DNA from: Geosiphon pyriformis uo1
Taxonomy: Eukaryota; Fungi; Glomeromycota
Length of the DNA: 64,000 bases
Assembly: GCA_016748015.1 (NCBI GenBank)
Contig: JAAOMT010000227.1
Location: 121,239-185,238 of the forward strand
Reading direction: 5' to 3'
Below, piece after piece: positions 32,922-56,466 of the stretch. Below the pieces are notes generated by a model, which was not told where the DNA came from, made no database searches, and worked only from the letters and a program-made list of their open reading frames with translations. The position numbers and the translations under genes were made by a program. The number at the start of each line of letters is the position of its first letter. Within the stretch, counting starts at the first letter, position 1.

Positions 32922-33620
32922 GAGTCATACTGCAACAAAACCAGACAAAGTGAACATTTGTATTACCAAGAATTTCAGGAATTAAAATTTGTAATGTAAT
33001 TATTAAAATTTTCTATTTGTTTAATATTAAGTAATATATAAAATTACTTCTATATAAAAATAGTTAATATGAAGTTAATTTACATTAGATCTACTATGAA
33101 ATCCAAAAATTATAGTATTATTAGAAGTATTCTAAAAAAAAAACAAAATGAAAAAATTGCTCCTTATATTTTCAAAATAAATAATACTTAAACATTAAAA
33201 ACTTATCTAAAAAAAAAAAGAATTACTTATAAAATTTACCAAGAAAAAAAAAATAATAAATGTTAAGAAAAGAAAGAAGCATAAAAATGTATTATTAACT
33301 AATAAAAAGCAAAAATCTTTAAATGAAAAATAACTACTATTTTTTTTAATAGGTGGAATGAATTTTAATTTATACAGAAGAAGATTTCCTTAATTACTTT
33401 TTTACTTTCAATTAAAATTATTTTTTAGTCTTTTTGATTTTAATTTGAGCAGTTAATTGACCATTCTGTTGATCTTTTAATTTACTGTTTTCTTCTTTCA
33501 GATAATTAATTTTCTCTTTTAAACTTTTTATCTTATTCAACAACTTTTGCTTTTGCCTTTTACTTCATTTCTTGGATTTCTCTTGAAATTTGGTTATTTT
33601 TTCCCTTTTAATTTCTAAGA
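32922..33620 (+). repeat. Left terminal inverted repeat
   Basis: gagtcatactgcaacaaaaccagacaaagtgaacatt... matches the reverse complement of 55772-56462, with mostly transition differences. Confidence 0.92.
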
Positions 33621-34789
33621 CTTTTTTAGTCTCATTTAGTTGTTTTTGTAGGGAGTTTATTTGTCTTTCATAAAAAGTAGGCTGACTTATTTCTTCATGA
33701 GATAAGAGAAAAAGTTTTTTCTCTTCTAAATCTTCATTGTTTCTAATACAGTAACAAATATTCTTATTATTAACAATATCAAAATCTAACTTAGTTTGCA
33801 ATTTACCACATCTATTGCACTTTGACAATTCATTATCCCAATACTTTTCTTCACATCTTTCACAAACCATGTCATCTGAAATTTATTTTCTAGTTACTTT
33901 GCTATAAGATCTTATTTGGTAAACAGATTTATTATTTTTGTTTTCAAATTTAGAGCAAAAATCACAAGTTTTTTTACTTTTTTTTTCTAATTCTAAAACT
34001 GTTGTTACAGATAATTATTTGGGGTCTTAAATCAAATAACAAACTTATAACTTAGTGCTTAATAGCTTTTCTGGTTAGTAATATCTGAAAATTTCGTGAA
34101 TTTAAAGGTTTGGTGTTCAGTTCTTTGTATAATAGACAAAGATTTAAGTATTGTAATCTATAGCTTTTCAAAATCGCAATTTTGTCAATTTTTTTCTCAG
34201 TGTAATGGCCAGTAATTCTCCTGGTAAGCTATTTTCTATTAAGTGTTCTATTCTTATTTTTGGGTCTTTTACCAGTTACTTTGATGTTGATAACTCTGTG
34301 CATTAATCTTTAATCAATTAGTAAACAACAAAAAAAAAAAAAAAAAAAAAAAAATACAAGAAAATAAAAAAGTTAAGCCAAGGCAATTAAGTTAATATTT
34401 TGTCAATAGCCATAATCAAGAGCTATTGTTTTAGTGTGGTCAAGTATTAATTACTATCAACACTTTATGTTAATAGTAGAAAGTGAATTAAGATAGCAAA
34501 TAGTTATTTATTGATATTTGTGATTTGGAATAGTTGCTTAAATAAAATCTAAACTAAGAGATCTGTCTTTTCTGCTTTTAATGCTTTTACTATATATATA
34601 TAATTTAGGTTCTACAAGATCACTCACATTTCTAAGTGATGTGTTATAACTTCTTAAACAATGCTCATATTGTTAAACAACATGCTCATATGCTAATTAC
34701 TACTCTCCTATTAGTCTATCTGTTTTTTCTACTATTTTTTTTTAGACATTTTCTTTATGAGTAACATTATTTCTTCCTTTTAATATTGA

Positions 34790-35550
34790 GCTCTGTCGAA
34801 ATTTTTACTTTGAATTAAGTTTAATATTTTTTTTTCTAATACTGTTTGTTCAACTTTATTTCTTATATCTTCAATTTGTGTGTTGTTCATTTTTCCTCAT
34901 TGGTTAATAGTGATTGTCTCCATGTCTGTGTGTAACAATATTTCTGGGTAATTTTGAAATATCATGTATAGTCAATAGATTGTTTTAATTTGTAGTGTTA
35001 GATTTGTTTTCTTTCTGATAATATTTCCAATATTCTATATTATTTCTTGATTGAATATCCTTTTGGTTGGATCCAGATATAATTTTTAAATGTTCACTTT
35101 TTGTCTTAACTGATAATAACAATATGGTATTAGAAGTTGTTTTATCTATTGCTTTCAATTTTCTTTTAAAAATTCTTCTGTTGAAATCATGATAATCATT
35201 TTTTTAAAGGTGTTTTTTACTTTCTTTATTATTTTATCTGACCAGTTTATTGATTGTTTCTGTAGTTGCTAGTATAGTGTACTTTTTCCTTTTTGTTTGG
35301 TGTTTCAATAGCAAATTGTTTGGTAGTTAATGACAATTTCTATGTTTAATTGCTGTTAACTTAAGGCCTAAAACAATTGTTAAGCTAAAGTGTGAATATG
35401 ATCTGGTATTTCCATTTTTTTTTGTTGTTTTTGTTGCATATACCATGTCTTTATATATTTTTTTAATTGTTCAATTTAACATGTTTGGTGTCAATAATGA
35501 TGATTGGTTCTAGATTTTATGGAATCTTATCTGGTTGGACTAGTATTTTT
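34790..35550 (-). pseudogene. G2 accessory ORF downstream of integrase
   Basis: CYYQLRQKV...IY*LYMIFQNYPEILLHTDMETITINQ*GKMNNTQIEDIR in a single frame. Confidence 0.6.
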
Positions 35551-35589
35551 TATATTTTTAGTTGTGAAATATTATTGGTAGATAATAAT

Positions 35590-38150
35590 GTGTAGTGATA
35601 AAGTTTTAGTCAATCACTATGTACTGCTTTGACTAAAATTTTGTTGTCCAATCTTAGCTTGTATGCTCCATTTTCTAAAATTTTTTTAATGTAAAATGAT
35701 CCATTCCATTTGGGATTAAACTTTCTACTCCATTGTTTTTCTGCTTTGGTATGATATAAAAGTACTTTGTTTCCAATCCTGAATTCAACTGGTTTGTCTG
35801 GTAATTGGTTATCATGTCTTTTTTTTTGTTTTGCTTATGACCTTTAAATGCTATCAGCTGCTTTTTGCTGTTTGTTTTCTAGTGTTTTCATTAAATTATA
35901 TGCTCTTTTCAACAATGTTTCTTGGAAATTGTCTTCTGTTGTTGGTTTAATTGGGTATGTATTGACTTCTATTTCAACTGGTAGTGTTGCTGTTTTATCA
36001 TATACTAATTCAAATGATGTCTTTTAAGTGGTATTTTGTTTTATTGTCTAATAAGCAAATAATACTAATAGTATCAACAAATCTCATTCATCCTGATTTT
36101 TTTGGCTGATCTTGGCAATTGCTTTACACAATGTTTTGTTGAACTTTTTAACTAAACCATTTGTTTGTGGATGGTATAGTGATGATAATAGTCTTTTATT
36201 CCAAATCTTTGACTTAGATCCTTAGTTGAATAACAATTCTTTTGGATATTTATGTCGACAAATTAGATTTTAATGAATAAATTTGACAACAGATTTTGCA
36301 TTTGCTTTTTGAATGGCTTTTGCTTCTGGCCATTTAGTAAGAAAATCCATAACTACTATAATATATTAGTTTCCTCTACTGGTAATTGTTAATGGTCTAA
36401 CTAAGTTGATTCTGACTTGATCAAATAGCTATTCTACTTTAATTAGTTTTAATGGTTTGCTGGTTCTTGTTTCTTCTCTTCTTTGACATACATTAGAGTT
36501 TTGAACATATTGAATAATGTCTGGATACATTAATGACCAATAGTATCTTTTTTTGGTTTTTTCCATAGTTGCTTCTTTGTGAAAATATTCTGTTGTTGGA
36601 TCTGAATACATGTTAAATAATATTGTCTCTTTCTCTGGTTCTGTAATTACTTTGATTAGTTGGTCTGGATTTCTTCTGTTCTTTTGATAAAGTGTATTTT
36701 AGTAAGTAATAAAGTATTTAGATTGTTGTTTGATATTGTTTTATTCCTTTTGAGATAATTTTTCCTTAAACTGTTAAGTATTTATATAATGCTATAGTTG
36801 TTAATATTTTTGTGTATTCATTTTTTTGTTATATTTTTGGGTTGAAATGTTTCTTAAATTTGTTTCATTTGTGACAAACCATCAGTATTTTCATTGTTTT
36901 TTTCTTTTTTATAATGTACTGTATACTTGAATGATAAAAGTTCTATTTTCCATCTGACATGGCAATTATTTCCAAATTTTTGCTTTTGGATTGATGTCAG
37001 TATATATATCAAATTTCTGGCTTAAGTATTTCTTTCATTTCATGACTGCCCAATAGATAGTTAAGTGTTTTAGTGCTGGTGTTCTATAGTTTTTTCTACT
37101 GAACTCAAACTTTGGCTGGTATATGCTACTGAATATTTTCTTCTATCCAGTTTTTTTTAAGATAGTACAGCTCTCAATGCTTGACCAGGTATATCAGTTG
37201 TAATAATAAATGGCTTGCTGTAATCTGAATATATTAGTACTGGTGCTTGGATAAGCTTTTTTCATAATATGTTGAAGGTTTTTTGCTGGGTTTCAGTCTA
37301 CTCATACTTGATATTTTTGACTTATAGTTGATAGAGTAATTAAGCCAGTTTGGAAAAATCTTTGATAAAGCAGCAATAATAACCTGTAAATCCCAAAAAT
37401 GCTCTTAGTTCTGTCAAGTTGGTTGGTATTAAAAAGTTTTTGACTATTTCAATTTTGTTTAAATCTGTTTTAATGCCATTTTTGCTCATAACATATTCCA
37501 AAAACTTGAGTTCTGTTTTGTCAAAGAAACATTTAGTTGAATTTAATTTTAATTCTACTCGTCTGAGCCTTTAAAACACTTGCTGTAGATGATAAAAATA
37601 ATTATCAAATGTTTTTGAGAACACATTGGTATCATTCAAATATATGACTACAGATTTTTATAGTAGTCCAGTGTAAATGATTTCTATTAGCCATTGGAAC
37701 ATGGTTAAAGCATTCATTAAGCTGAATAGTATTACTTTAAATTCAAAGTTCTTTTTTTTTGTGGTAAATGCTGTCTTCTCTTTGTCAGCTGAATTTATGG
37801 CTACTTGCCAGTAATTATTGTTTAAATCAAGTGTTGAGAACCATTTTTTTCCTCTGAAAATATCAAATAATTTTTGGATCTGTAAAATTGAATAGCTGTT
37901 TCTATGGATAATACTGTTGAGTTTTTTATAATCTGGATTTTCCCATTTTTCTTCTGGACTAATACCATTGGTGATGACCATGGATTTATTGATAGTTGAA
38001 TTAACCTGTTGTCTAACATCTAATTGATTTTCTGTTGGATGATTTCATGGTTAGCTAATGATACTTTGTATGCTTGCTGTTTTATTGGCATTGCATCTTC
38101 AGTTTTGATCTGATGTTAAATTATGTTGGTTCTGCCAAATTCATTTTTAT
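35590..38150 (-). pseudogene. G2 RT-RNase H-integrase
   Basis: NPWSSPMVLV, WFSTLDL..NYWQV, KTAF, IYLNDTNVF; integrase YYWSLMYPDIIQY...VCQR, FLTKWPEA, YHPQTNGL. Confidence 0.9.
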
Positions 38151-38659
38151 TTGCAAAAATGTTGGTGAAATTGTTGAATAACATTTTGGATTACATACAT
38201 TAAAGTGGGTCTAAGTTTTCTATGTTCATTTGTTCTAATTGTTCTGGTTGGAGCAAATAATATTTGTTCTGTCCATAGATTATTTGTAATATAATGTCTA
38301 TATATCCACACAGTTGTAGAAAATCTGGAATAGAGCTTGGTGCTTGATCTTCAATTTTGGTGCTTATGTATCCAATAATAGTTCCTTCCAGTATTTCTAT
38401 AATATTTCCCATATTGTTATAGATGAGAATTTTAATGTGACTATAGTTCTTGGCTGGTATGTAGAAATTGACTAATCCAATCTTTTCTGATTCACAAAGT
38501 GTTGCTTCTGCTTCAAAAATCTGATTTTGATCCTTCACTTTTCTTTTTATAGCTAATATGTACTGATCATATAATGGAATAGAAATTGATTGATAGATGG
38601 AGATAATTTTTCCTTTGTCAATAACTTCTTTTTCTGCCATATTAATTGGTATATCTATT

Positions 38660-39060
38660 CTACTTATGGATCCAAATCCATTAATTTCTCTTGCCATAAT
38701 CTCTAGTTTTTCTCTACTTCCCATTGATACTAACTGAGCTATTTTAACCAGAGACAGGAATATTGCTGTGCTATCTTTTCATTTGGCTCTATGGTATAGG
38801 TTTTTTCAAAATCATTTTGTAGTATTGCAATAATATTTCTTACATATCTTGCATCAATTATTCCTCCTTTGATGTTAATTTCTTTTTTTACTAAACTACT
38901 CTTAGATGCTAGTTGAACCATTGTTGTTGTTGAAATCTCTAGTGCTATTTTTATATTAATGCAGGTGCATAAATATGGTTTCAATTTAATGGCATTTTTT
39001 CTCAAATATCTCAGATCAAACCCTACATTGGTATTATGTACATGTTCTGGCATGATACCT
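38660..39060 (-). pseudogene. dUTPase domain within G2 pol
   Basis: Trimeric dUTPase motifs: VGFDL (I), ASKSS (II), GGIIDARYVR (III), EKIAQ (IV), REINGFGS (V). Confidence 0.88.
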
Positions 39061-40199
39061 TCATCATTATTACTGAACCATTTTAGTTCCTGCTTCTTGG
39101 AGAGGTCAGGGAGCATAATATATTGTTTAGAATTTGAATTAGAGTTTGAATCATTATTGTTATTATTGTTAATTTGAATTGAGCTGAAACTATTGTTGTT
39201 GTCATTATTGTCAGAGTCTGAATTAGAATTGAACTATAATTCCAATTCTAATGCACAGCTGCTAATTGGTTCTTTCTCTACAGAGATCATGTAAATCATG
39301 CATGATAGTGGATTGTAAACAATGTCACAATCATCACAATATTTGAAGTTACTGAGAATTAAACAATGTCTGCATAGTCAGATATTCAACTGTTTTAACT
39401 GTTGCTTTTGTTTTTTTCTAATAGGTGTTAGGTTTTGGTAGTGCTCATGAAATTGCTCAGGATTGTCTTTGCTGTCATTAAAAATGTTCAAAGTTACAAT
39501 GTATTTGGGTTCAAGAAGAGTAAGTAAATTGTTTTTGATTTCTAGTATTTCACTGGTTGAAGCTCTTTTTGCTTTTGTGCTCACCATTTTCCAGATTTTA
39601 TGTTTGTCATATAGATACCCTTCCAATCATTACAGTACTCACTTCCAGATGTTGTTGATTGGAGTTTCTTTTCATATCTAGTTATTGATAAGAATTATGT
39701 ATTGACACAATTTATTGCATGTTTTTCCTCTTCCTAAAATGTTGTTCCATATTTCTTTGTCAGATAAAATAGTTCTACATGCTAAACAAGGTTTGTTATT
39801 CTATTTTTTTGTTGTTTGGATCATCTAAACTGTTTAAAAATGCATGGATAGCAGTAAAATTTAGTTGCTATTGGCCATTTTTTGTTGTCACTATAACATG
39901 CACCCATTGTAAACAATTTTTTGCCACAATTGACACATATGAGCTTGGGTCAATAATAATTTGTTTGAGATAGTATGGTGTATAGAATATACATAATAGT
40001 AGTTATTTGTGCTAACTCTTCTTCTTTTTCCTTCTTTTTTTCTTTTTTCTTTTCTTCCCAAGTCAAAATTAATGGTAATTCATTGTGGTTATTATCAGAT
40101 TATGAAACTTGATAAGCCTTCCAGGTAGGGGTTTTTTTTTTCTTCAAATTTGATTAATGGTGCTAATATGGTGCTGTTTAGTTTGAAGTGATCACACAT

Positions 40200-42880
40200 G
40201 ACTGGCATTCTTATATGTTGTTTGTTCTGACTAAGCTGTAGCTTTTGCATGTTCCAGTCAAGCACAGCATTGGTTTTGACTAGCCAGTCATTATCAATTA
40301 GTACTTAGTATTAAGTAGTTTCTATTACCAAAACTTTGATTGGTGTAATAATACTATTAACTTTAAATAAGAAATTATCAATCTTGTCAATAGAAGTTTT
40401 GGTTATTCTATTAGCTATTATTATCCTGGTGCTGGCAGCATAATTAACTCAGCAACTTAATTGGTCCATGAATTGTTGTGTGATGATGCTGTCTGCTAAT
40501 CCACTATCCAAAATCAGTTTAATAGTCTGTCTATTGACTTTAGTGTTAGTATACATAGCAGTGGTGAGTTTAATATTGAGTGCAGCTCCACTAAAAAGAG
40601 ACATTGTTGATTTTTTAAGTTCAAAGAAAAAGATGGCTGCAAGAAATTTGTCTTCCATAATAGTTGCTGAAGATATATTGCTAGTAAATGGCTCTTAATT
40701 GGTTTTCCAGTTGTTGAATATGGCATCTTCTGAGGTAACTAAGAGACTTAAATAATTATGAGAATTCAAATTTTGATTATACCTAGTTCCCAAACTCCAC
40801 TGTTATAATTCTGATGGTTGATTTGATAAACTGGGGATTGGTTGGTACATAACTATTGCCAATTGCCAGTTTTGTTGAGTATGGGTGATTTTTGGTTTTT
40901 AATTTTTAGATGTTAAATAAGCTGAGTTTAATGACAATGTTTAAATTGGTTGGAGTTGATAAATTACTTGTGGCTGCAGTGGTTAATAAATTACTGGTGC
41001 TGTTGGCTAATAAATTAGAGGTACATATATTGGCTGTTGTGTCATTTGGGTGTAATGAAATTGATATTGATCCTAATTTAGATAATAACTTGGAGTTTGA
41101 AATCTGCAATTAGGGTTTTAGTATTGATTTTCTGATTGTAAGTTATTATAAAATCAGCAGTCAGCTCTTAGATGACATTGTTTGCCACAATTGTGGCAGA
41201 CACACATTTTTTGTTATCATGGTTGATTTGATGATAATGAGGAATATGACTGATTTTGGAAATAATTCATGTTTCCTGGATTATTGTGTCATTGGAGAGA
41301 TTAATAGATTGCCTGATTATTAGCTAAGTATCCTTTTAATTTCTGATTAATTGAATCACTGAATTGTTTCAGTTTAGAATTCAATTTAGATGATCCATTC
41401 ATTACTAGATTTATGGCTTGGGTGTGGTTGGCTTCTAATTAAGTGGTTTTAAAATTTTTGGCATAAATGACTGTGGCTTGAAAGTCTGCTAAATGTAATA
41501 GACATATACATTAGAGGATGCTACTGTACAGGCCTCTAATAAATTAATCCAAAATTTGTGGTATGATAAAATAATCAGCTTGTATTGCTTGAATTTGGTG
41601 CAGATTTCTGTAAAAGTGTTCCAAGTAAGTAGTGACTGCTTCAGTTTTTCCTTGTTTAATAGTAATAAAGGTGTTGGCTAAGCAGTTGATACTGTTATTA
41701 TTGCTAAAATATCACAGAAACTTAAGCTTAAATTTATTGAAATCTTGGAGTTTGTTGACCAAACTTTGATATCACAAGTTGGCAGTATTCTGGAGAAAAT
41801 ATAAAATGACTTGTATGGCTCTGGCATTGTTTCATTCATTGGCTGTGATGACTTTTTTTATATTGTTCAGCCATACTTGTGCATCATTTTTTTCACCAGT
41901 AAACTTTTCAAGCTTGACAATAGATACATATGTCATTGGTATAATTAGTGGTTGCTATTGTACTGGTAGTTGTTGAAGTAAGATTGGCAGCTGTTGCTAT
42001 ATTGGTTCAACAATCAGGTCAATTAGTGGTTGATTAATCATGATTACTAAAGGTAAGTTTTGCTAATTAATAAGATTGGGGTTTGGATTGTGCTGATTTT
42101 TCTGAGTTTAAATATTTAGAGTTTCAACTTCCAGGTTTTCTAAAATCAGGTTGTGATAATAGAATTTTTGATTGTTGTTTTCTTCTTCTTCTGATTTGGT
42201 TATTTCCCAGAAACTCACAATTCTGAAATCTGATTGAGATAGTGGTGATCAAAATCCTAATGGTATTAGTGATCACGATTTAAATCCTTCAAAATAATCA
42301 TTGTAAGTTCCTAATAATTCTGCTTTCTTTTGTTTACTTTGAAATAGAAGTCATTCAAATGTTGATGTCATATTTGATGTAAATATATCTGCTAATGTAA
42401 TATTGATAGTACTTCTAGGTGTGTGATGATATAATAGATATAGTGGAGATTCAATTTTTTGTTTCTTTTACATTGGTAATTGTATTTCTTTTGGAATTGC
42501 TGTTGGTGTTTGTAACTTTTTTTTACTCTTATCTGCATAGGTAATAGAGAATTGTTGTTGAGTATATCTTTTAATTTCTTGATAGATTTCCCTAATGATT
42601 GGTACAAAACTGTGATTTTGTAATAAACTGGTGTGTTGAATTAATTTTGTATAGAAATTTTTTCTTGCTAATTCAATGTCAACTGGTCTTCCTAGAAAGT
42701 CTGTGATTCTTTTGTTGATGTAAAAGTTGAAGGCTGATTCTATTGGATAATGGTTGTTGGTTAAGTCCAATTGTTAGCTGTACTGTTGAAATAAAAATTT
42801 GGCAAATTCTAAATGGTTTGTTCTTATTATTTCTGATTCTGCCACTTTTGAATGATTGCTGTTGGTGCTGGTTCTTTGTA
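40200..42880 (-). pseudogene. G2 gag and aspartic protease
   Basis: KLEKFTGE..DAQVWL gag; knuckle CHNCGKQCHLRADC (~41160-41205); protease IKLILDSG. Confidence 0.85.
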
Positions 42881-42887
42881 GGATTAT

Positions 42888-42905
42888 ACTTTACAGGAAG
42901 CACTA
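42888..42905 (-). other. G2 primer-binding site
   Basis: TAGTGCTTCCTGTAAAGT, 2 nt inside the 5' LTR; equivalent to G1 TGGTGCTCTCTGTGAAAT. Confidence 0.7.
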
Positions 42906-43694
42906 AATGTTACAAGTGATTATTTAGGATCTCAAATCAAATAACAAACTTATAACTTGGTGCTCAATAGCTTCTCTGGTTAGTGATATCTGAAGATTTT
43001 ATGAATTTGAAGGTTTGGTGTTGAGTTCTTTGTATAATAGACAGATATTCAAGTGTTGTAATCCATAAACTTCCTGGAATTACAATTCTGTCAATTTTTT
43101 TTTTAGCATAATAGCCAGTAATTTTCCTGGTAAGCTATTTTCTATCAAGTATTTTACTCTTATTTTTGGGTTTTTTACCAGTCACTTTGATGTTGATAAT
43201 TTCATGCATTAATCTTTAATCAATTAGTAAACAACAAAAAAAACAAACAAAAAAAAGAAAAAAAAAAATACAAGAAAATAAAGAAGTTAAGCCAAGACAA
43301 TTAAGTTAGTATCCTGTCAATAGCCATGATCAAGAGTTATTGTTTCAGTATAGTCAAGTATTAATTTTTATTAACATAAAGTGTTGATAGTAAAAAGTGA
43401 ATTGAAATAGCAAATAGGTATTTATTAATATTTGTAATTTGGAATAATTGGTTAGATAAAATTTAAACTAAGAGGTCTGTCTTTTCTGCTTTTAATGCTT
43501 TTGCTATATATACATAATTTAAGTTCTACAAGATTGCTTATATTCTCAAGTGATGTGCTATGACTTCTTAAGCAATGTGTTTACATGCTAACTATTACTT
43601 TTTTATTGGTCTATCTGTTTTTTCTACTATTTTTCTTTAGACTTTTTTTTTATGAGTAACACTGTGTATTTCAGTTCTCTCATTGTAATTTATT

Positions 43695-44700
43695 TTTTAT
43701 TTAAACTTGACTTTTACTTGAGCAATTATTTCTTGGTTGTAGAATTTTTTTTTTGATTAATTTTTGTAATTTTTGGAACTTAACTTTTGCTTTTGTTTTT
43801 AATTGCTTAAAAATGTTCTGTTTAATTGATAATTTGTTCTTTTTTACAGATAAAACAAGTAAAGATTTATTATTTAAGTAGAATAAATTCTTTAGATTTT
43901 CATTTTGTGTTTCACTATCAATTAATTGCTTATTTAATTTTTCTATTTTTTTGCTCTTTTAACTTGATTTTTCTTCCAACTTTTCAACTCAGGCTTCTAG
44001 ATAAGAAATCTTTACACTAGTATTTTTAAGTTTCTTGTTTTTCTCTTTTATGTCTTCTGTCTGATTTTTGCTTTATTTTTCACCAACTGCTATGACTTCT
44101 TTAACTTGTTTCTGTTCTATCTTTATTCTTTCTTCTAGTTTTTCTATCTCTGTCTTTAAATCTTTAATTCTTTCAACTTTACTTTCAATAATGTCTTTAA
44201 GAATTATATTCTTAGCTGGTTAACCAAAAATTTCATCTTTTTTTTATTTAAGAAAAAATATAAGCTCTTTGATTTCATAATTTTCAATCTTTTTTTAATT
44301 CAGTGGCTAATTCAGTGTCTTCAAAATAATCTATAATAATTCTCTCAAATACTTTTTCTAGATTTTCTTTACCTTTTTATTTATAATTGTGCATAAGACT
44401 ATGTTGAAAACAACCATTTATAAACTGATTTCTTAGAGGTTTGCTAATCAATTTTTTTAAATTTTGTTCAATATTCTTACTACAATGAGGAAATCTATTT
44501 TTTATATTTACCAATATTTGGTAAATTTGGTCAATTGCTTTTTGCTTAAATTCTGCTTCTTTTTGTTCACTTACTTCTAGATTTTTTAATTCAGTAATTT
44601 CTTGTTTTTTATTAGATAATTGCTTTTTCAATGTTTCAATTTTATTGATTAGTTCTTTATTTGCTTGTAGTTGTTTATTTATTATGTTTTTTATGATTTT
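43695..44700 (-). pseudogene. Decayed intronless coiled-coil gene(s), MRE-like, directly upstream of the 43683 start
   Basis: K/E/Q-rich frames (44377-44631). The last frame ends QEIIAQVKVKFK* about 12 nt before the next ATG. Confidence 0.45.
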
Positions 44701-44802
44701 TATTAATTATATTCTTCAATTTTTAATAAATACTTAATATCTTTTTTTTTATAAAAGCAATATTAAGTATATAATTATTTTATTAGTTTATTTTTAAATT
44801 TT

Positions 44803-46560
44803 CTATTCATTGTCAGCATAAATTAGTTTTGGACAAGTAACATTTTTAAATTTATTCTTTACAAATAGACAAATATTATTATAAAGGTATTCTTGTCTTT
44901 TGTAATCCAAAAGAGGTGGTGTTAACACTAAAATAAATAAAGCTTTAATTTTTTCAAAAATATCTGTTCTCCTAATTTTTAATAAATTAAATTCAACAAA
45001 AAAACCATTAGCAACTTTTTGAACTTTTACTGTACCAAAATTAGATGTTTTAAAAAAAAAATTTTGATATTTTTGTAAACTATTTAATTTTTTAAAATAA
45101 ATTTCCAAAATAGCTTTAATATCCAAATATTAAAAAATTTTTCCATCTTTATAATATTGAGCTTTATTTAATTCTGCTGGACTAGATTTTTTTACCACCT
45201 CAATCACATAATTCAAACAGTCTACTCTTGTTCTTCTATAGAGTTTTTAATCATCTTAAAATTGCTATCATATTTGAATTTAGTATGTTCTAGAACCATG
45301 AAATTTAATTCAATGTTTTCATAATAACCACAAATTACCAAATATAAATAAAACCAAACTGTTACATTGTTTTTATTTTGTCCACCTGCATTATTACAAG
45401 TAATCTTTAAATGTTTTTCATCTCTATTTATTTTCTTAATTTTATCAAAAATCATATTAAGAGTGTCATTGAGTTCTTTTTTTATAATTTTATCTTTATT
45501 AAAAACATAATTAATTTGTTTTTTTGCTGTTTTATCTTAAATACCAAATAAATAAACTTTACATAAACTAAAATAATAAATTTTACTTATTTGTTGATCT
45601 AAATAAGACACATGAACATTTTGGGTTTAATTATAACTATAATAAACAGTAGTATTAATACTGCAATATTGTGTTTTACTCTTTGAATATTTTTGGTTAA
45701 CTAGTTTTCTTTGTTCTTTTGCTAATTTTATATTTTTATTATAAAATTTTTTTTCTATTTTGGTCTTGAATAAATGTTCTTTAAATCTTTTGAGCAAATC
45801 TTTAGTTTCTTTTTTTTGGCAAACATTGTAATATAAACTATCTCTAAAATGTTAACAAGTATTACATAGATCAGTTTTTGGACTTATAATTTGAATTTTT
45901 GGTGTTAATTGATGTCATAATTTTTTGAAAGCATTATATTTTAAGGATTTTATATTATTATTATTTTCTTTTATACCAGCCAGAAAATTTTTGTGGACTG
46001 ATTTATAACTCATTTCAGCTGGTAAGAATACAATTGATTGAGTTATTCTATTGATACTTCTTTCTGGACTTGGCAATCTATAGATTTTTGCATAATTTTC
46101 TAGAAAATTCTTTACTACTTCTGTAATATCTTTGTCAATCACTATCTTAGTTATTCATTGAAGTATTTTTTTTATGTTATCATAAACTCTTGGTAAAAGA
46201 CTATTGTTTATCAGATAATTTCTAAGATTCTTAAAATAAGTTCTATTAATGCCCAACATATTGAGATAAGTTTTTTGACAAAAAAGAGTATTATGATCCC
46301 AGTAATAAAAAGTTCTTTTATTAGATCTAGTTTTCTTTTTAAAATGGCTGCTAGCACTTCTTGATCCACTATCTATGGCTTTAAGTTGGATTATTAAAAA
46401 TGTGTTTTTGTTCTGATTTAAAAAAAGCTTAAAAAAATTCTCTTAATTCTGCAAATTCTTCTTTGGAAATTCTTGAAGAACAACTACAATTACATCTTTT
46501 TTCTAAAAAATCAATGGCTTTTTAATATATATTAGAACTATTATATTTATTACTTTTCAT
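44803..46560 (-). pseudogene. Sola1-like DDD transposase
   Basis: SPKTDLCNTC; YYSYN*TQNVHV (eroded YDWAQ); TCNNAGGQNKNN (DNxGGQNKN); FMVLEHTKFKYDSNF (GHT...D); KRQEYLYNNIC...TCP. Family assignment is from remembered motifs. Confidence 0.8.
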
Positions 46561-46989: not shown

Positions 46990-47290
46990 TTTGCTCACAT
47001 AAAAGTTCATTGATAATAGTAAACACTTGACAAACTTCATTTTTTAGAGTTTCTTAACAAGTACTTATTTTATCAAATGATATATGGTAGATATTTTGGC
47101 TTGTTGAAATTATGTCATAATTTGCTGAAAAAGCAATAAAAAACCAGCTTGTAATATCAATGACAATTCTATAAACACTATTATCTTTATGCTTGTATTT
47201 AGTATTTTCTTATATAAAATATTGTAATTCAATATCTATAGTCTATTAACAATTCTTATACAGAAAAATAAACTGTAAAATACTCTAGTA
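46990..47290 (-). pseudogene. REase-fold (Crinkler-associated type) remnant
   Basis: ENTKYKHKDNSVYRIVIDITSWFFI...TSQNIYHI...VCQVFTIINELL resembles the AMF ..KRK....YGIVT....W.F family. Confidence 0.45.
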
Positions 47291-48175
47291 ACAGCTCCCA
47301 ATTAAACCAAATTTTGTGCTACTCCCCCAAACAAATTCTGCATCTTTGCTTTAGTAATATATATAACATTTTGTTTGTAGTAAATTTGGAAGTTTAAAGA
47401 ATCTTAACCATGTGTTCCAGATGAATGTTATTCGATGCAAACACTAATTTTATCTGCATTCTTCTTAAGTACTTTTCAACAAAAGTGAACAGTGTTGTGG
47501 ATTATGCTAAATATAAATTCAAATTAAGTTGCTTTATTACTGTCACTAAGCATACCCAAATTATCTTGTCATTTTTGAATTTAGAGAACATAAATAAGCA
47601 ATTTGTTTCCAAATTGAAAAAAGTCGCAGTATGTTCTACATATTTTATTGTAACAATAAAAAATAGGTATTTTAAGATTTTTAATTAAAGAAATATACAA
47701 TGTATTATGTGTTATTTTTTCATATAATAACTAATTTTTCTTAATATTTTATATAATAGAAAATACAGCAAATACACAATCTAAAATCAATTCATTATTA
47801 CTGCAGAATAAATAAATCTTATGTTATAAATTTGATTTCAATGATGCTATCACTGAAATTTCAATTACATGATTTTGATTTTTATATAAATTAGTGACTA
47901 AATTTTAATAGCATAATAGAATTTTTAAATGTGGATCATTTTTCAAAAATTGTTACATGGTTATTTATATTATTTTACAATAGTTACCTTATTAAAAATA
48001 ATGCTATTATATGACAAGTCACAGATTTGTATATCAAAAAAAAAATTTTTTTTATAGACATGTAATTTTCAAGCTTTTTTATTATATCCTATATTCTAAT
48101 CAAATCTGATCAAAAGTTTTCTCATAATAATACAATAAATAAAATTTATAATAATAGGAGATTTAAAATGTTATA

Positions 48176-48636
48176 TGGTTGGCTTGGTCTAAAGACCTCC
48201 TATTTTTGTGCCATATGATCAAAAATTTCAAAAATAGCAATTTTGTAATTCATTTAAAATACAATAAATTTTTTTTAAAAATTTTTGAAAATAGGGTTTT
48301 ACGTAATTTGGGGTTTAAAAATTATTTCATACTGCCAAATTTATATATAATGATCATGTGCTAATCTAAATTTAAAAATAATTTTTGTGGTTTGGTCTAA
48401 ATTTAGTAATAATCCTAAAAACCAAATTCCTCATGAACATAGTAAAGTACATGTTCTAAAAAAAAATAGAACTTTACAACAAATAATTTTTTTGAAAATA
48501 TCTCATTATTATATTAAAAATAAAGACTTATTCTATCAACTAATAATACTATTTTTTTAAAAAGTAGGACAGAAAGTGACTTTTATATTTTTAATATTTA
48601 TGCAAAATTTAAGAGATTTTTAGACTAAGCCAATTA
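48176..48636. mobile_element. MITE (461 bp) with ~24-bp TIRs and probable TA TSD
   Basis: tggttggcttggtctaaagacctc versus the reverse complement of gagatttttagactaagccaatta; TA on both sides. Confidence 0.65.
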
Positions 48637-49458
48637 TAATAACACATACAAATTTAAAATATGAAATAAAAGAATCAATAAACTTAACAGTATAAAAGAA
48701 ACAAGAAACTAATAATATTACAAATAAGTAAAAATAAAATATTATTATTATATATTTACAAATTTAATTTTTATGAAAAAATTTAAGAATTGAACTTAAT
48801 AATTACCTTTTTTTTGGATATATTTAGAAATTTAAAATAGTATTATATATTTAGAACAAAGATAATTTTTTACCATTCTTTTATTTAAAGCATTATGAAA
48901 TTCAATTGTCTTCCAACTGGTATCTTTTGCTGCTAAATACAATTCAATATATAATTTGTAATCATTTACAAACTTATTTCTCATTTCAGTTATTTGATTA
49001 TAAAGCAATATACAAAACATGTTATAAGCATGCAAGAAAACAATGCACAAAACATGTAAAATTTGTGAAACAGCATGTAAATATGTTTATTAACACAACA
49101 GAAATGTTAATATTCTATTTACTAATAAAATAATGATTTTTTTTTTAATAAAGACAATATCCTGTTTATATAATTAAAGTAAAATATAATAAAAATAATT
49201 CACAAAATAAATTCCAAATTAATTTTATATAAGACTATTCCTCAAAATAATTAATATATATATATATACACACATATATATTTAAATTTAATTTTTCACG
49301 TAAAATAATGATTAGAATTAAATTTCATATATATTAAGATAATAAATAAATTCTAGCCAATAAACTCAATTAAATTTGTCGATCATTATTGACCAATCAC
49401 AAAGAAATTTTGTTATGCTAATCTTAATGTTAATACAAAATTTGTTTACTCTATAATT

Positions 49459-52127
49459 ATGGCTATGCCTAATGAAAACAGATAACTTATTGATTTTTTT
49501 TTATGAGATCTAACACAATAGTAACCCTGCTTTTCCTCTGTCCATACTCTAAAACAGATTCTTGAATATTTCAATTGCATGTCTTCCAAATGGAATATTT
49601 TAAACTTCTTAGATAAATGTGATCTGAAACAATTTGATCAGAAAATAGGGCTATACCTTAAATCTCTGGAAAAAATTGCCAATAAAGAAAAAGGTAAAAG
49701 ACAATAAAAAGCACTTATCCTGCTCAAAAAATACAGAATGGCAAGTGTTAGTTTAGAACTCCTGTTAAAGATTTGGTGGCATGGGAGGAATCTAGAAGGT
49801 TTCTGTCATTCAAGTCTAGAAGGTAAGCCACAAAGCTAATGTTAGGGCCCAGGTGATCTAGAAGATTGCCTGGTGTTTAAGGCTAGAAGCTAACCTAACA
49901 TTGGCCCCACAGGGCGCGGACAATCTAGAAGGTTGGCCAAGTTTAAGGCTAAAAGCTGAACCTGTGGGATAAATAAAAAAGTTAGGAATTTGTTAATTAA
50001 AAATTTGCTAATTCTTTGAATCTTCTTTATTAAGGTGCTTAATCTGATTACAATTTGGCAAAAAAATAGAAAAGTGAGCATGAATCAACTAGTGCCATTG
50101 GTGAACCTTCAGTTTACCTTCATAATCCAACATTTATAGGAAATCCTTTGGTAAAAAATACTGGAAACATTAATGATAGGACTTTTAAATTATCTGAAGA
50201 AAGTGTGCCAAAAAGGAAAAAGAACAATGATCATAAAAAGATATATGTACACATTTTTTTAGATATATTTATTACTTTGTAATTTTATTCCTAATGAAGA
50301 CCTTAATATTTAGGATAATCCAAAACGAACAAAAACTATTGATAAAGCAGAAAATATAGATGATAGTAGGACAGATTCAGAATATGATAAGAAAAATTTA
50401 AACTATGACGATGATTTAGACTATGATAATAATAATGATAATGTAGATTATAATAACTACGATATCAATCCAAATATTGAGTTATCAGAAAAACAAATAC
50501 CAGTCCAAAATCACTTAAAGTACCCCAATAAAAACAGTTCAGACAATATTTGGAAGTTGCCTTCTGGCAAATCTATTAATAAAATAATTTGTGGCCCTAA
50601 AAATTTGCACAAATTGCAATAGGTTTTATCTTCTTTATTTCTTCTCTTTATGTTTCTTGATCTAACAAATTAGCCCATGTAATTTGTATATAGCCCATCA
50701 TATTTAAGTATTTTACACATTGGATCAAAAATCAGGAAGCCGGAATGGATTAAGCAAGAGAATTGGAATTATTTAAATTCAAGTGTTGAATATTCACATT
50801 ACAATTTATCAACCAAAATTGAAGATCTATTCAATGTACTATTAGAAACTGTAAGTACAAATAGTAAAAATGCTCATTTATTTTAATGAAAATGTTATTT
50901 ATATATTTTTATTATTAATTAATAACAGAATTCATTAAATAAGTATAAAAATTGTCTTTATAATATCACATTTGACCATGAGAAAAATATAAAAATGACA
51001 TTTGTAACAGATGTTCTATTATGGTTGTAAGTATAAAAGTTTTGTAGAAGTACTGTTTATTTCTCACAATTTATTTTTTAATTTATTTTAATTTTAAAGT
51101 GCAAAAAACATATTCAACACTAAAAATGAAGCATTGTTGAGATCATTTATGATTCATCTAGTACTACAATATCTTGTAAATACAACCAATCACATTATAT
51201 ATGTGCCGTATGTTTTTTGATTAAAATATCAAATTAATACTTTCATTTTTCTTTATAATATTAAATATGCAAGTTTTTTCAAAAAATAGAGGTAAGATTT
51301 ATCTTAAAGCTAATGCAAATTAGTGATTATTATGATGTAACTTCAAACCTGATAATGATAAACTCTTGGACATGAAAGTTGATGGTTCTTTCTAGTTTCC
51401 AAATGATAAAAGACTAGAAATTGGCATGGTTGAATTATCTAGTAGATACTTAACCAAGAATACACTTTGTTATTTAAAGAATCACGTAAAAAAAAATTGG
51501 GGATGCCATGATCTCTTTAATAAAATAATTAAAAAATACAATCATGATAACTATAAAATTCTGAAACATTTATGTGTTTGGTTTTTCTATATACATGGTA
51601 AGTTAATAGATAAGCTGAATTTTAATTTTTGCATTTGTTAATAAATTGTCTTTGCTTGTGCATAAATCTTGAAGTACAAATATGGGGCATAGATTTGCCT
51701 GTTGCAAAAACTTATTGAATGTTTCTTATTGATGTCTTTTATCTTCCAATCAGTTGGAATAACCATTATAAACTAGTCCACGCATTAAGGGTTTTGCAAA
51801 ATCTTAGGGTAAGAAAAATCTTCATTCCTTTGTATTGAAAGTATTGAAATATCTCATTTTGATCATTATTTATTTTCATACAGAGAGGTTTAAATGATTC
51901 TCTTAAGGTACTTGAAGAATTCAAAAAGTCACATCACCAAAATACAATTATATGCTTTCAATCTCCAACACTAAAAAGATATATGGGTGATGCTAAGAAT
52001 TCACCACAAAAACCTATGGGAAAAAAATCACATATCATAAATCCAGTAATGCATCACATGTATCATGATCATGATGATTCCAACAATTAATATGATCCAT
52101 TTTCACCATCTCCATCAAGACATTAAA
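49459..52127 (+). pseudogene. Multi-exon Glomeromycota-type gene with C-terminal PD-(D/E)xK-like domain (cargo)
   Basis: EYFNCMSSKWNILNFLDKCDL...; acidic tract; IWKLPSGKS; VDGSF...LEIGMVELSS; QIWGIDLP. Several short GT-AG introns and one GC-donor intron; in-frame stops. Confidence 0.65.
49772..49968 (+). ncRNA. Candidate intronic structured RNA: three abutting three-way-junction units
   Basis: Units 49772-49834, 49835-49905 and 49906-49968. Each has a different outer stem that still pairs, and two hairpins with C(UAGAA)G loops. Confidence 0.7.
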
Positions 52128-53046
52128 GATGAAATTAAAGTTTTTATTTACTATACATTGAATTTAAATTTAATGAAACATTTTTTTAACATGATTATTG
52201 AATTATTGGTTAGCGAGTATGTGTAAAATTTATTTTGCATTCTTAAAATAATATTCTTGAGATATGAAATGGAAATTGTTAAGTCTTACTATAAAAGTAT
52301 AATAAAAAATTAATAAAGTAATCCACAATAAAACTTATTAATCATTATCAAATTGCATAATTTGCAATGTTTTTATTTATGATTTAGTCTTGATTTGATA
52401 CTGTAAACATTCAAATAATTATCACAATTATTTAATGGTTTTAATAAAAAGATAATTTAATTGTTTTAAAATTACAAAAGTTATCTTTTATTTGATTAAA
52501 TTTTAGTCCTTTAAATAATAAAATTACATGTTTTAAAATAATATAAATTATAAATTATATTGTAATAATTAAATAAATTAAAATACAATCTCTAGATTGT
52601 ATGAAAAGCTTATAGACTTCTCAGAAAATACAATCATAGTTAAAGATAACTTTTATTAAACATAATATAAAAATAATAAATAATATAATAATATTCTCCT
52701 CAATCTAACAATATGAATAATAATATAACATCTAAAACCTCTAATAAAATATATGATTACAATTATAATAATATCTTTAATTCTTTAGCACCATAACAAT
52801 AATACTGATTGTTAACAGGATTTTTTTGGATTACCAAATATGGTAATAAAAATTAATTACCAAATTAGAATTATTATATTTTTTTTTTGTGATCAATAAT
52901 AATTCAAAGATTGTTACAGATACCCTGTGATAAACATATTTGATTCATATTTTTTGGAATTTTTGATGACAGTCCGTTGCCAAAAATTTAATACTTTAGT
53001 TATATTTTAAATAAATAATAAGATATAAAAAATCTATTACTAAAAC

Positions 53047-54845
53047 ATGCAATCTGAAATTGATTCACTAAAGCAATGAATTTCTGAGCTTGAAACCAAG
53101 AATGCCAAGCTTTTAAAACAGGTTATGGAAGAGAATGCCAAGTGAAAAGCTGAAAATGCTGAGCTTAAGGCCAGAATCAAAGAGCTAGAGAAAAATAAAA
53201 TAGATACTACTAACCTTAAGGCTGAGAACAATAAGCTTAATACCAGGGTTGTAAAATTAGAACAGTCATCAAACAATATTACACACGAATTAGAAAATTC
53301 TGTTCTCTACAAAGCATCGTCTATAAAGTTGTGAGTGAAACTCTTCCAAAAATCAGTCATGGAGTTTTGACATGTCATACACTAATTGTTTATTAGAGTT
53401 TTGCAGAGTTTCGCATTTTGGGGGTTTTGACAATTGACAGATTTTTAATAGGTTGCACATTAATTGTTTATTAGAGTTTCAACAGAGTTTCAACTAGTCA
53501 CTAAGAGGTTTTGCCCATAACTTTAATCATTCGATATTTCTTCCAATATATGTGCACCCCCATCCAAGTCTAAATTGTTAGAAGATATAGAGACTGATAA
53601 TTTTCTAGATGTGCAGAGTAAGAAAGAGGTTAGTGATATGATAAGAAAGAAAAGCAAGAAAAAGAAACTTCAAACTCAAGGGTTACATAATACCTCTTTA
53701 CCAATGTCAACTCTGTTGATATTATCTGAAATATTAATTTCTAATGATAATTCACCTGAAGTCTTTAAAGCTCTGGACTTAAAAACCAAGAATCAAAATC
53801 AAATTAAAAGCCAAAACAAATTACACAAGAAAAAAGGAACTAAGAATATTGCTCAAGTGATAGCTGATGGCATTTAGGATGCACTTGCACACAGCTTCAC
53901 TGATAATATCCATTCAGAATTGAATCATGTGACTGAAATTTCAGTGATGGGCCATTATCAAAATTTTGATACAATTTCATTATTTGATTTAGTTCAATTA
54001 TTTGATAAAGCAACTAATGCTGAATATTATGCTATGAAAGCTAACCAGAAAGAAACCTTATGCTGGATCAACTATGGAAATGAATTCATAATTCAGTATA
54101 ATAATCTTATAAAAAATAGTAATAGCAAAATTGATAAGAAAAAGGCAAAAAGTATAATTTGTAATAAAATATTACTATTATCTGTAAAAAAAAATCCAAG
54201 GAAATAGAATTACAGCTTTCAGAAATTTTACATAAAACTTTATTTAGAAAACCCAAAAAGCTGTAAAGACATATAAGTTATTTGAAAAAATATACAAAGA
54301 TAAAATTAAGTATCTTAAAACATATAGCACAAATTCTATTTCAGAGTTAACCAATGATCAAATTCAAAAGATTATCAATAATAATAATATTTTTGATTAT
54401 GATAAGTTCAATATAAAAGAAAAATCAAATCACATGACTGAAATTTCAACAACATTTTGTTACCAAAATCATAAAACTGAAATTTTGCCTGAGGTAAATA
54501 TATCTATCAAATCCAAATCTTTAACTCTTCTGTAAAAATAAAGAACTTATTAGAAGCCAAGATAAGTATACCATTTGTATTTCATTCCAAAAAGGCTTTA
54601 TTAGAAACTGAGATAAATGTATTATTAGTATTTTAATCTCAAACTGAAACAAAGACTTTATCTAAGAAACAAAATAATCTAATCTATGACTATGCTTACT
54701 TTCATAATAAGATATTGTTGTAATATTCAAATCTATATAAAACATTTATTGCTAAAAAATTTGATTACTATAGAATTAATGAGAGATCATTATGCCCAAT
54801 ATGTAAACTAGATTATAAAGATGAAAAAAGTATAAAAAAGTAATA
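53047..54845 (+). pseudogene. AMF-type expanded-family coiled-coil gene (MQSEIDSLKQ...), cargo
   Basis: MQSEIDSLKQ*ISELETKNAKLL...; EDIETDNFLD; ANQKETLCWINYG; TQKAVKTYKLFEK...STNSISELTNDQIQKII; C-terminal SLCPICKL. Confidence 0.65.
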
Positions 54846-55384
54846 CTAAAAAAAAGTAATATATAAATCTTTATGTATATAATGTATTAGAGTGTATAAT
54901 GTCCTAATTAAATCAAAATTAATTGGTAATCTGTCTATAAATCGGGACAAATAATCTACATTTAATAATAAATTTTGGATTAATAAAACATATCTCACTT
55001 TCTTTACTAATTAAACATTTTTATAAAAACATAAGTTTAATAAAAAAGTTAGATAATGAAGTGTGAATAAAGCAAAAAAAGGCTGAAAAAGCATTGAATA
55101 AAACCATAGAATAAAAAAAATAACAAATATTTGAAACTGTGTTAAAGCATAATACTGTAATAGACAAACTTCAAGACCAAATAAATTTATTAGAAAATAA
55201 TTTAGCTACTAAAAATCAGAAAATAAACTGAAAAAATTATTTAACAACCAAAAAATTACCATCTTTACCAAAGAAACAAAAAGAAAATAGATTATGCAAA
55301 CTCAAAAAATTAATAAGTAAAGTAAAAAAAAAGGCTAAAGAGAAATTCCAGACTTTTATTGTTTAAAAGAACAAGTAAACCAAT

Positions 55385-55981
55385 ATGAGATTAAAATATA
55401 GAATTCTGAAAATAGCCCAGAGAGATAAACAAGAGTGTAATTTCTGTTTTCTAGATTTTAATAACCCAATTCTCCTTAATTTTAATACTGCTCCTGCTAT
55501 TTATCAAATAGTGATTCATAATACTCCTGATGGTTATTTTAACATTGTCTTTATCTGTGGTAAATATAAAAAAAATTATGATAATAATACTCTTTCATGA
55601 TGTGAAAAATGTGGTAGGTTAAAAAGGAATAGAAACAGATGTTTTTGTAGTCATTTAAAAACTAAATCAACTAAACTACTTTTTAACAAAGAACTATTTT
55701 TACAAGTCTTTAGTTTTTGCCTAGAAAATAAAACTAAAAAACTAGAAAATGAGTTATCAATTACCAAAAAAGAATTAAAAGTTGAAAGAGAAAAAATAGC
55801 CAAGTTTTAGGAAAAATCAAAAAAGTAAAGTAAAAAGCAAAAACAAGAATTATTAAATAAGATAAAAAGTTTAGAAGAAAAAATTAATCATCTAAAAACA
55901 GAAAACAAAAAATTAAAAGATTAACAGAATGGTCAATTAACTGCTCAAATTAAAGTTAAAAAGACTAAAAGATGATCTTAA
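55385..55981 (+). pseudogene. Intronless Cys-rich + coiled-coil gene (MRE-like), running into the right TIR
   Basis: MRLKYRILK...CNFC...IYQI...LS-TGA-CEKCGRL...CFC...QLTAQIKVKKTKR-TGA-S-TAA; paralog of the left-end gene. Confidence 0.65.
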
Positions 55982-56462
55982 TTGAAAATAAAAAAGTAAT
56001 TAAGAAAATTTCTCTCTGTATAATTCCAAATATTAAAGAAAATGATATTTATTTTTTTTTTAAAGATTTTTGCTTTTTGTTAGGTAATAATACATTTTCA
56101 TGCTTCTTTTTTTTCTTAAAATTTATTATTTTTCTTTTTTTTTGATAAATTTCATAAGTAATCTTTTTTTTTTTTAGATAAGTTTCTAATGTTTAAGTAT
56201 TATTTATTTTGAAAATGTAAGGAGCAATTTTTTCACCTTGTTCTTTTTTTAGAATATTTTTGATAGTACTATAATTTTTGGGTTCCATAATAGATCTGAT
56301 GTAGATTAACTTTATATTAACTATTTTTATATAGAAGTAATTCTATATATTACTTAATATTAAACAAATGAGAAATTTTAATAATCACATTACAAATTTT
56401 GATCCCTAAAATTCTTGGTAATACTAATGTTCATTTTGTCTGATTTTGTTGTAACATGTTCC
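55772..56462 (-). repeat. Right terminal inverted repeat
   Basis: Reverse complement begins ggaacatgttacaacaaaatcagacaaaatgaacatt. Confidence 0.92.
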
Positions 56463-56466
56463 ATAT

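Follow-up and report, generated by a model that had tools for sequence, protein, structure and literature searches.

The 64,000-nucleotide stretch of DNA analysed here (the window) is part of contig C686 of a genome assembly of 128 Mb in 792 contigs, and its positions 32922–56462 are in all likelihood one old, inactive cut-and-paste copy of the Sola1 superfamily with gene remnants, lying in an AT-rich genome of the Glomeromycotina type. The G+C content of the window is 21–34%, and the relatives of its proteins belong nearly all to Glomeromycotina, the closest named ones being Geosiphon, Ambispora and Paraglomus. A preliminary description had regarded the same region as a giant, cargo-carrying, Sola1-like transposon, and both the cargo idea and the Sola1 reading are supported in substance, more strongly for the family than for the decayed copy in the window. 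As to the family, we tentatively put forward the possibility that a Sola1 lineage in several orders of Glomeromycotina uses a slot at its 5' side for cargo, namely a long-kept gene of the Crinkler type (with ubiquitin-like and restriction endonuclease (REase) domains) or else FunK1 kinase or other genes, and that it may be a vehicle copying conflict-type or effector-like genes within, and possibly between, the genomes of arbuscular mycorrhizal fungi (AMF). Labels beginning with C denote contigs of the assembly, those with L extracted loci and those with P protein entries; some of the loci bear two names (C648 is L060, and C732 is L059). The complete copies of the family that were compared are that of the window and L043, L044, L045 and L048 (n = 5).

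Target site and boundaries of the inserted unit

The unit is bounded by two long terminal inverted repeats (TIRs), at 32922–33630 on the left (plus strand; terminus GAGTCATACTGCAACAAAACC...) and at 55763–56462 on the right (minus strand; terminus, read on that strand, GGAACATGTTACAACAAAATC...). A gapped alignment of 32922–33630 with the reverse complement of 55763–56462 comprised 697 aligned bases with 87.4% identity, in agreement with the inverted repeats of about 700 bp described earlier, and a repeat finder recognized three collinear inverted blocks that together pair 32902–33630 with 55763–56482. The termini noted in the preliminary description, GAGTCAT and GGAACAT, are both decayed versions of the family end, GGGGCAT(G/A)CTGCAACAAAACCAGACAAAGTGAACAT, which was obtained from an alignment of 24 termini. 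A continuation of the TIRs past 33630 and 55763, sought across the retrotransposon insertion described below, was not found at the DNA level; further inward, the likeness of the two ends persists at the protein level in an open reading frame (ORF), named ORF3. No internal termini of the family were found within 32922–56462.

Directly outside the TIRs, ATAT is present on the left (32918–32921) and on the right (56463–56466). The interrupted sequence is a Ty3/gypsy long terminal repeat (LTR) retrotransposon (copy A), and another copy of this retrotransposon (copy B), which is nested in the element, provides a paralogous "empty site". When the joined left and right flanks were aligned to 39781–40139 of copy B, ATATATAT stood opposite a single ATAT (39937–39940), and the alignment was collinear on both sides. 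Since one ATAT exists at the uninterrupted paralogue and two around the element, this is a true 4-bp duplication resulting from a precise insertion at a single site. The exact ATAT duplication reported before is hence confirmed, and so is the precise interruption of the feature called G1 in that report, but G1 is a Ty3/gypsy LTR retrotransposon and not a host gene. A composite of two elements was ruled out by the same empty-site alignment.

The unit spans 23.5 kb, part of which is due to the nested 9.6-kb LTR retrotransposon (34003–43577). After subtraction of the latter, which had also been made in the preliminary description, the native length is 13.97 kb (about 13.9–14.0 kb), in accordance with the 13.9 kb given there. 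The term "giant" accordingly applies in part: the remaining 14 kb are to be compared with 4–8.6 kb in the sister copies.

A Sola1-type family in the genome

The 26-base core of the terminus was found at 140 places in the genome (69 forward and 71 reverse), against 0 for a reversed control pattern, and the terminal ~35 bp are conserved at these places. In 19 of the 24 aligned termini, the adjoining flank reads ATAT, AAAT, ATTT or AATT (AWWT), about 2 being expected from base composition. A pair of TIRs surrounds the transposase in each of the five complete copies, and paired duplications were recognized as ATAT in the window, ATAT/ATAT in both L043 and L044, the non-palindromic AAAT/AAAT in L048, and an imperfect pair in L045. 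A search with both termini, as recommended in the preliminary description, has thus revealed at other loci what was predicted there, namely paired TIRs with AWWT duplications and an enclosed transposase. The transposase core piece has at least 71 matches in the genome. Paired termini elsewhere imply elements of 0.35–8.6 kb, including miniature derivatives; of the listed elements, that of the window has the greatest length. Head-to-head termini 350–520 bp apart occur at C348:37702–38102, C637:372078–372545, C419:114637–114995, C612:132065–132587 and C718:2169530–2170048; these pairs are likely to be miniature derivatives of the Sola1 family, resembling miniature inverted-repeat transposable elements.

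The AWWT target duplication is a hallmark of Sola1 (PMC3845634), and Sola1 has been recorded in Rhizophagus irregularis (Muszewska et al. 2017; PMC5751038). For Sola1-1_AP, Sola2-1_HM and Sola3-1_HM, the RNase H-like cores are given in the supplement of Majorek 2014. Over these short motifs, compared by eye, the core of the intact copy L035 (...KVTCDNAGGQNKNN...VPGHTKFKCD) follows that of Sola1-1_AP (...FYSDNCGGQNRNR...ERGHTQS) and is unlike both Sola2-1_HM (TDGCAGQYKN...SHG) and Sola3-1_HM (SDNASSYHGN); a further motif of the Sola1 pattern is YYLSPRKVHLFGIQD here versus FYYKRKFAVYNFTVYD. The Sola1-like identity suggested at first is therefore upheld by the core motif and by the AWWT duplications at several loci, and the family has in common with Sola1 (Bao et al. 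2009) the 4-bp AWWT duplication, TIRs, which enclose the transposase in several copies, and the RNase H-like core with DNxGGQN(K/R)N and GHT. It differs from Sola1 in its very long TIRs (0.43–0.7 kb), which hold coding sequence, in a variable 5' slot of extra genes, and in the native size of the window copy (14 kb). The Sola1 transposase would recognize the conserved ~35-bp termini, insert the element at AWWT and duplicate the 4 bp.

The transposase of the window is a remnant of three exon equivalents at 44827–46533 (minus strand), delimited exon by exon by tblastn to the intact L035: exon 1 at 46533–46408, exon 2 at 46145–45630 and exon 3, in two frames, at 45581–44827. Several stops and, in its last block, a frameshift interrupt the reading frame, and the gene is dead. 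The DNxGGQNKN/GHT-type transposase pointed out in the preliminary description is present in this remnant with a decayed motif, since the window has CNNAGGQNKNN and LEHT where intact copies have CDNAGGQNKNN and PGHT. The Pfam family DUF7869 was recognized in the window piece 45222–45455 (E = 1.6e-9) and in L035 (E = 1.6e-16), and look-alike clusters with DUF7869 come mostly from Mollusca, Arthropoda and Rotifera. Downstream of the transposase, a segment at 44380–44706 (minus strand) is shared with the sister C648 (tblastn, 71% over 28 amino acids (aa)).

Most of the genomic copies of the transposase core have exactly one in-frame TGA in the 71-codon match (for example, C640:162212–162424, C692:618160–618372 and C718:921463–921675), whereas no TGA occurs in that of the window or in a few others; this is probably a recurrent or inherited change from TGG to TGA at the W of ...TIWFYLY.... 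Relatives of the transposase (P0075 and P0139; 52–56% identity, DUF7869) were also found in contigs of metagenome-assembled genomes (one of them 124,773 bp long) of Candidatus Moeniiplasma glomeromycotorum, a Mollicutes-related endobacterium of AMF. They represent either fungal DNA binned with the bacterium or a transfer between host and endobacterium.

Coding sequence is also found in the ends of the element. A short inward-reading ORF (MKLIYIRST...) lies in the left TIR at 33069–33191 (plus strand) and is mirrored in the right arm; it is encoded by the best-conserved segment of the TIR, query positions 115–340 being the part that most genomic copies share. In L044 (1252–1509), this ORF is intact and encodes 85 aa with a basic PRKKRK stretch near the end, and it has no match in Pfam. 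The inner part of the ends in the window, C788 and C648 is occupied by ORF3, which encodes two CxxC pairs and a coiled coil. ORF3-left (33568–33882, minus strand; CxxC...CxxC followed by the coiled coil) and ORF3-right (55379–55798, plus strand) both read outward; the former shows 35% aa identity to the equivalent place in C648, and the latter 65% to L003/L056 and 36% to C648. ORF3-right is held in a subterminal region (55042–55762, plus strand) that is shared with C788:311896–312574 at 76% of nucleotides (nt). The coiled-coil family that had been counted among the passengers is consequently a subterminal part of the element itself, common to C788 and C648.

Genes in the slot upstream of the transposase

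The window and its sister copies have only the TIR and the transposase in common. Among themselves, the sisters have kept a TIR of ~300–430 bp and everything from ~70 bp upstream of exon 1, and what lies between is wholly different. The distance from the terminus to exon 1 is 365 bp in L048, which has no insert, and 9.9 kb in the window. The slot of L044 (3.1 kb) contains an intact ORF of 443 aa (ORF2), that of L049 (2.7 kb) two ORFs belonging to a FunK1 kinase (PF17667; E = 5.9e-6 and 2.7e-13), and that of L047 (~4.6 kb) no recognisable family. The slots of L043 (~1900–4380) and L052 (~5911–9190) consist of a run of N starting right after a shared ORF (MQYSTKPVTVFKLFS...). The comparison of cargo among copies proposed in the preliminary description thus shows that the content differs (ORF2, FunK1 kinase or none), and the slot between the 5' TIR and the transposase is the site at which content changes from one sister copy to another.

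In the window, the slot extends for ~9 kb from the right TIR to the transposase and contains a decayed ORF2 on the transposase strand and the remnants of two genes, X and Y, on the opposite strand. This slot (9.1 kb) is otherwise nearly unique in the genome at the DNA level, and C788, the closest copy, has in common with the window only the TIR and 55042–55770. No match in the window was obtained by tblastn with ORF2 of L044, FunK1 of L049 or the cargo ORFs of L047, and in a Pfam search with ten cargo ORF pieces from the window and its sisters, none of the window pieces was matched. Of the "at least five" passenger gene remnants counted before, one of the two REase-fold genes is present (ORF2, recognized by its family profile), the second is a weak lead, and no evidence was found for "MRE-like" genes among the cargo; X and Y are two further remnants.

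The core of the decayed ORF2, a gene for a Crinkler-type protein with a ubiquitin-like part and a PD-(D/E)xK nuclease, is located at 47299–47544 (minus strand), and its likely full extent is ~46990–48280. A profile (A1) built from 20 homologues scored 20.4 bits against the window, with stops read as X, over profile positions 244–321, which include the D...E-x-K motif. The remnant is located immediately upstream of the transposase and shares its strand, just as ORF2 does in the sister copies. Beyond the query locus L044, five further ORF2 loci were found, that is, C566, C641, C568 and C656 (80%, 75–83%, 46% and 42% identity to L044, respectively) and the window remnant, and to judge from the coordinates of the TIR and transposase matches, each of these loci has a 5' TIR on one side and a transposase on the other and lies on the strand of the latter.

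An AlphaFold model of ORF2 (mean predicted local distance difference test score 82.7) comprises two beta-grasp domains in residues 24–200, matching ISG15, di-ubiquitin and PB1, and a PD-(D/E)xK domain in residues 198–429, matching BpuSI (Z 13.3), DrdV (Z 10.3) and HsdR (Z 10.2); the homologue of Gigaspora rosea is near Pfam HSDR_N (E = 4e-5). A profile search with the family returned 1290 cluster representatives. Among these relatives, proteins of Mortierella, Entomortierella and Apophysomyces have the Pfam Crinkler N-domain ahead of the homologous nuclease domain, and the profile matches P0226, P0234, P0235, P0238 and P0250 at E ≤ 1e-29, which carry PF20147 at E values of 1e-18 to 1e-41. In contrast, PF20147 was not recognized in ORF2 of L044 at E ≤ 1, nor in the AMF homologues P0142, P0147 and P0154. 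Based on the predicted model, ORF2 would be of the Crinkler type in architecture, without being a proven Crinkler: it resembles Crinkler proteins in its N-terminal beta-grasp and in its C-terminal PD-(D/E)xK domain, the REase-fold part being homologous to that of proteins with the Crinkler N-domain, and it differs from them in having no PF20147 match and two beta-grasp domains and in being transposon-borne.

Neither a transposase nor a terminus of the family lies within 7–8 kb of the homologues of ORF2 in R. irregularis, G. rosea, D. epigaea and at one Ambispora locus. On contig L067 of Ambispora leptoticha, a terminus, ORF2 and the transposase are collinear with L044 (81–82% nt), and ORF2 is intact in both L044 and L067, where the neighbouring transposase has stops. 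In a maximum-likelihood tree, which left out the copies of C568 and C656, the transposon-borne ORF2s formed one clade with short branches (100/100 support), nested among solitary genes; the clade consists of sequences of this genome, Ambispora L067, two Geosiphon entries, a Paraglomus entry and the solitary Ambispora L068. The simplest reading would be that the Sola1 lineage acquired ORF2 on a single occasion from a family of host genes and has carried and spread it ever since; given the 42–46% identity of the C568 and C656 copies, the association is old, or else capture recurred.

The protein divergence within the transposon-borne clade is 10–18% between the Paraglomus, Ambispora and Geosiphon-type sequences. 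The transposon-type ORF2 proteins of Paraglomus occultum, A. leptoticha and Geosiphon pyriformis (P0001–P0006, L067 and L068) are 66–90% identical to the copy found here, and other paralogues between those lineages are far more diverged. Such closeness across AMF orders possibly reflects horizontal spread of the element, or cross-sample carry-over in single-nucleus assemblies. In Funneliformis caledonium (CAJVPQ010000289.1; L069 78–1950), a Glomerales-clade homologue of ORF2 ends ~200 bp from a family terminus (TGGGGTATACTGCAACAAAATAAGGCAAAGTGAACAC) that points toward it, and the contig ends 78 bp upstream.

Gene X is a pseudogenised multi-exon gene of host type at 53113–54840 (plus strand), delimited by collinear tblastn matches to a G. 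rosea gene (L066:9971–12144) in six blocks, the best of which has 49% identity over 121 aa (E = 2e-28). An intact-looking paralogue with three exons exists at C732 (82% nt over 152 bp), and for the N-terminal half of gene X nothing else in the genome matches. The exons from G. rosea and C732 belong to no Pfam family. In G. rosea (QKWP01000166.1; L066 7986–12144), the gene X homologue is located directly downstream of an ORF2-like gene on the same strand, and neither a Sola1 transposase nor a terminus is close by; the two families also co-occur in the window slot, where they are arranged differently. A motif of 21–26 bp encoding NH(V/M)(T/I)EIS is present in gene X at 53923–53948 and 54428–54448 and, inverted, in the ORF2-remnant region at 47849–47874 (92% complementary). 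Gene Y extends approximately over 50070–52223 (plus strand), and its two pieces (50683–50883 and 51396–51638) both match C654:119064–119924 and C661:21771–22708 in the same order and spacing (29–40% aa). It has no match in Pfam, and in the Atlas it falls in uncharacterised clusters of Mucoromycota, with a PD-(D/E)xK cluster at 0.76 as the weak lead to a second nuclease gene. Both X and Y are therefore copies of host-type genes that have become pseudogenes, and they lie in a unit that was inserted at a single site. They may have been acquired as DNA, through template switching while a gap was repaired or through recombination within the slot, and would then have been carried passively.

Three other explanations of the unit and its genes have to be weighed. 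With 140 termini in the genome and miniature derivatives of the family in existence, adjacent ends are plausible, and the 23.5-kb unit might therefore be a chance pairing of two family members, or of an element and a solo end, around host DNA. This is extremely improbable, since the flanks are contiguous in the paralogous retrotransposon copy except for one extra ATAT, indicating a single entry site; moreover, the TIR arms are long, collinear and equally diverged, and there are no internal termini. The extra genes may, on the other hand, not be cargo at all: X and Y, and perhaps ORF2, would have entered after landing, as independent insertions or as filler in break repair, and the transposing element would have been an ordinary Sola1 of 4–7 kb. 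One large internal block, copy B of the retrotransposon, is demonstrably a later insertion, and X and Y are absent from the sister copies and lie on the strand opposite to the transposase. We consider such later entry unlikely, however, because no inverted or direct repeat pair (TIR or LTR) was found around X or Y, the ORF2 remnant is exactly where sister copies have ORF2, and other copies possess different genes in the same slot, which is better explained by replacement in the slot than by random insertions.

Somewhat less doubtful, yet still on the unlikely side, is the view that ORF2 is a long-standing accessory gene of the Sola1 lineage, kept as a helper (a nuclease partner of the transposase, or a selfish toxin-like module). 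Every further ORF2 locus of the genome sits in a transposon, always at the same position and on the same strand, and the identities fall from 83% to 42% aa, as expected of a long association; the same arrangement is seen in Ambispora, and in L044 and L067 an intact ORF2 stands beside a transposase with stops. However, copies with apparently complete transposase exons have no ORF2 (L048) or another gene (L049), solitary homologues in four fungal lineages have neither transposase nor terminus in the vicinity, and the transposon-borne clade is nested within host genes. We therefore prefer to regard the unit as a Sola1 copy whose 5' slot had received host-type genes. Several points weigh against this interpretation. 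Short-read contigs fail to bridge the left junction, so that the assembly there stands without an independent check, and a clean target duplication of the nested copy B was not found. The assignment to Sola1, supported as it is, derives from motif comparison and target duplication rather than from a tree with reference Sola1, Sola2 and Sola3 transposases. The ORF2 remnant of the window is so diverged from the L044 clade that it was matched by the profile and not by tblastn. In the region upstream of the closest copy, the stretch C788:298000–307999 has no match to the terminus, transposase or cargo, and a second copy of the element with the same X and Y was not found, so that no other copy shows these genes in transit; that they moved with the element is what we infer from the window copy.

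In gene-capturing DNA transposons such as Pack-MULEs, CACTA elements and Helitrons, copies or pieces of host genes inside the ends multiply together with the element. According to the preliminary description, a cargo-bearing element of the present kind is not known to have been described, but chimeric Sola2-Fanzor1 elements are known from Dictyostelium and Polysphondylium (Bao and Jurka 2013; PMC3627910). Like the family found here, these produce AT-rich 4-bp duplications (ATAT, AAAT and ATTT), and their transposase part is common to the copies and their captured-gene part differs. They are different in having Sola2 instead of Sola1 motifs, TIRs of 12–21 bp instead of long ones, and Fanzor/TnpB as cargo instead of the Crinkler-type gene with ubiquitin-like and REase domains, the FunK1 kinase and other host genes. 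In fish, the Crinkler-like AACRNL was amplified through neighbouring hAT elements (PMC12957317). From this case and from the gene-capturing transposons above, the present family differs in superfamily and host and in that its slot has a constant place, from the 5' TIR to the transposase. The surveys of AMF transposons that were searched do not mention Sola or cargo, and in the limited literature consulted no account was found of a Sola1 family in AMF whose slot holds a Crinkler-type nuclease or kinase.

AMF genomes are rich in lineage-specific and highly copied families (kinases, Crinkler-like genes and orphan genes), and the route of their multiplication is an open question. As all ORF2 loci of this genome lie inside the slot, a cut-and-paste family with genes in a fixed slot offers a definite way in which genes can be duplicated and possibly also passed from one AMF lineage to another. 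The proposal that gene shuttling expanded Crinkler-like families in these fungi can be followed for one small family, ORF2, all loci of which in this genome are transposon-borne, and not beyond it.

Retrotransposon layers and decay

Copy A, the host retrotransposon, is located on the minus strand and consists of a left part at 26255–32917 (LTR at 26255–26889; RVT_1 at 30323–30610, minus strand) and a right part at 56467–60000 (LTR at 59349–60000), in which 56685–57956 matches 40183–41442 of copy B. With the target ATAT copies counted in, copy A is 26255–32921 plus 56463–60000, interrupted by the Sola1-type element. Copy B (34003–43577, minus strand; LTRs at 34003–34663 and 42908–43577) contains minus-strand remnants of RVT_1, dUTPase and Integrase_H2C2; its domains follow one another as protease-like, dUTPase, reverse transcriptase and integrase, so that direct LTRs surround protease, reverse transcriptase and integrase in the order of Ty3/gypsy elements. 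The two copies share 71–82% nt in collinear blocks. The LTR pair of copy A shows 83.8% identity by blastn (86.3% in a global alignment), and that of copy B 85.4% (86.5%). Copy B is entirely inside the TIR element, and since its two flanks are only ~0.8 kb apart in the sister C648, it is a later insertion.

The divergence is ~13% each for the TIR arms, the LTRs of copy B and the LTRs of copy A, and with values this similar, divergence gives no relative ages for the three layers; their succession was taken from the nesting. Over the TIR arms and both LTR pairs, the counts of transitions and transversions are 75:13, 81:8 and 84:3. This bias suggests one shared C-to-T decay (deamination of methylated C, or a process like repeat-induced point mutation) and not independent ageing. 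The element entered an ATAT within the Ty3/gypsy copy A, the other copy of the same retrotransposon then struck the element, and all three layers thereafter decayed through transition-type mutation. In short, the window copy is a decayed relic without function, and its value is that of a clean and datable example, with boundaries proven by an empty-site paralogue, that sits between an older (copy A) and a younger (copy B) retrotransposon insertion.

A separate repeat of ~550 bp is present in four copies in the window (29847–30394, 9043–9588, 13638–14032 and 62223–62618). The copy at 29847–30394 is inverted relative to that at 9043–9588 (85–88%) and constitutes an insertion in copy A relative to copy B, the offset between the two retrotransposon copies jumping there by ~520 bp.

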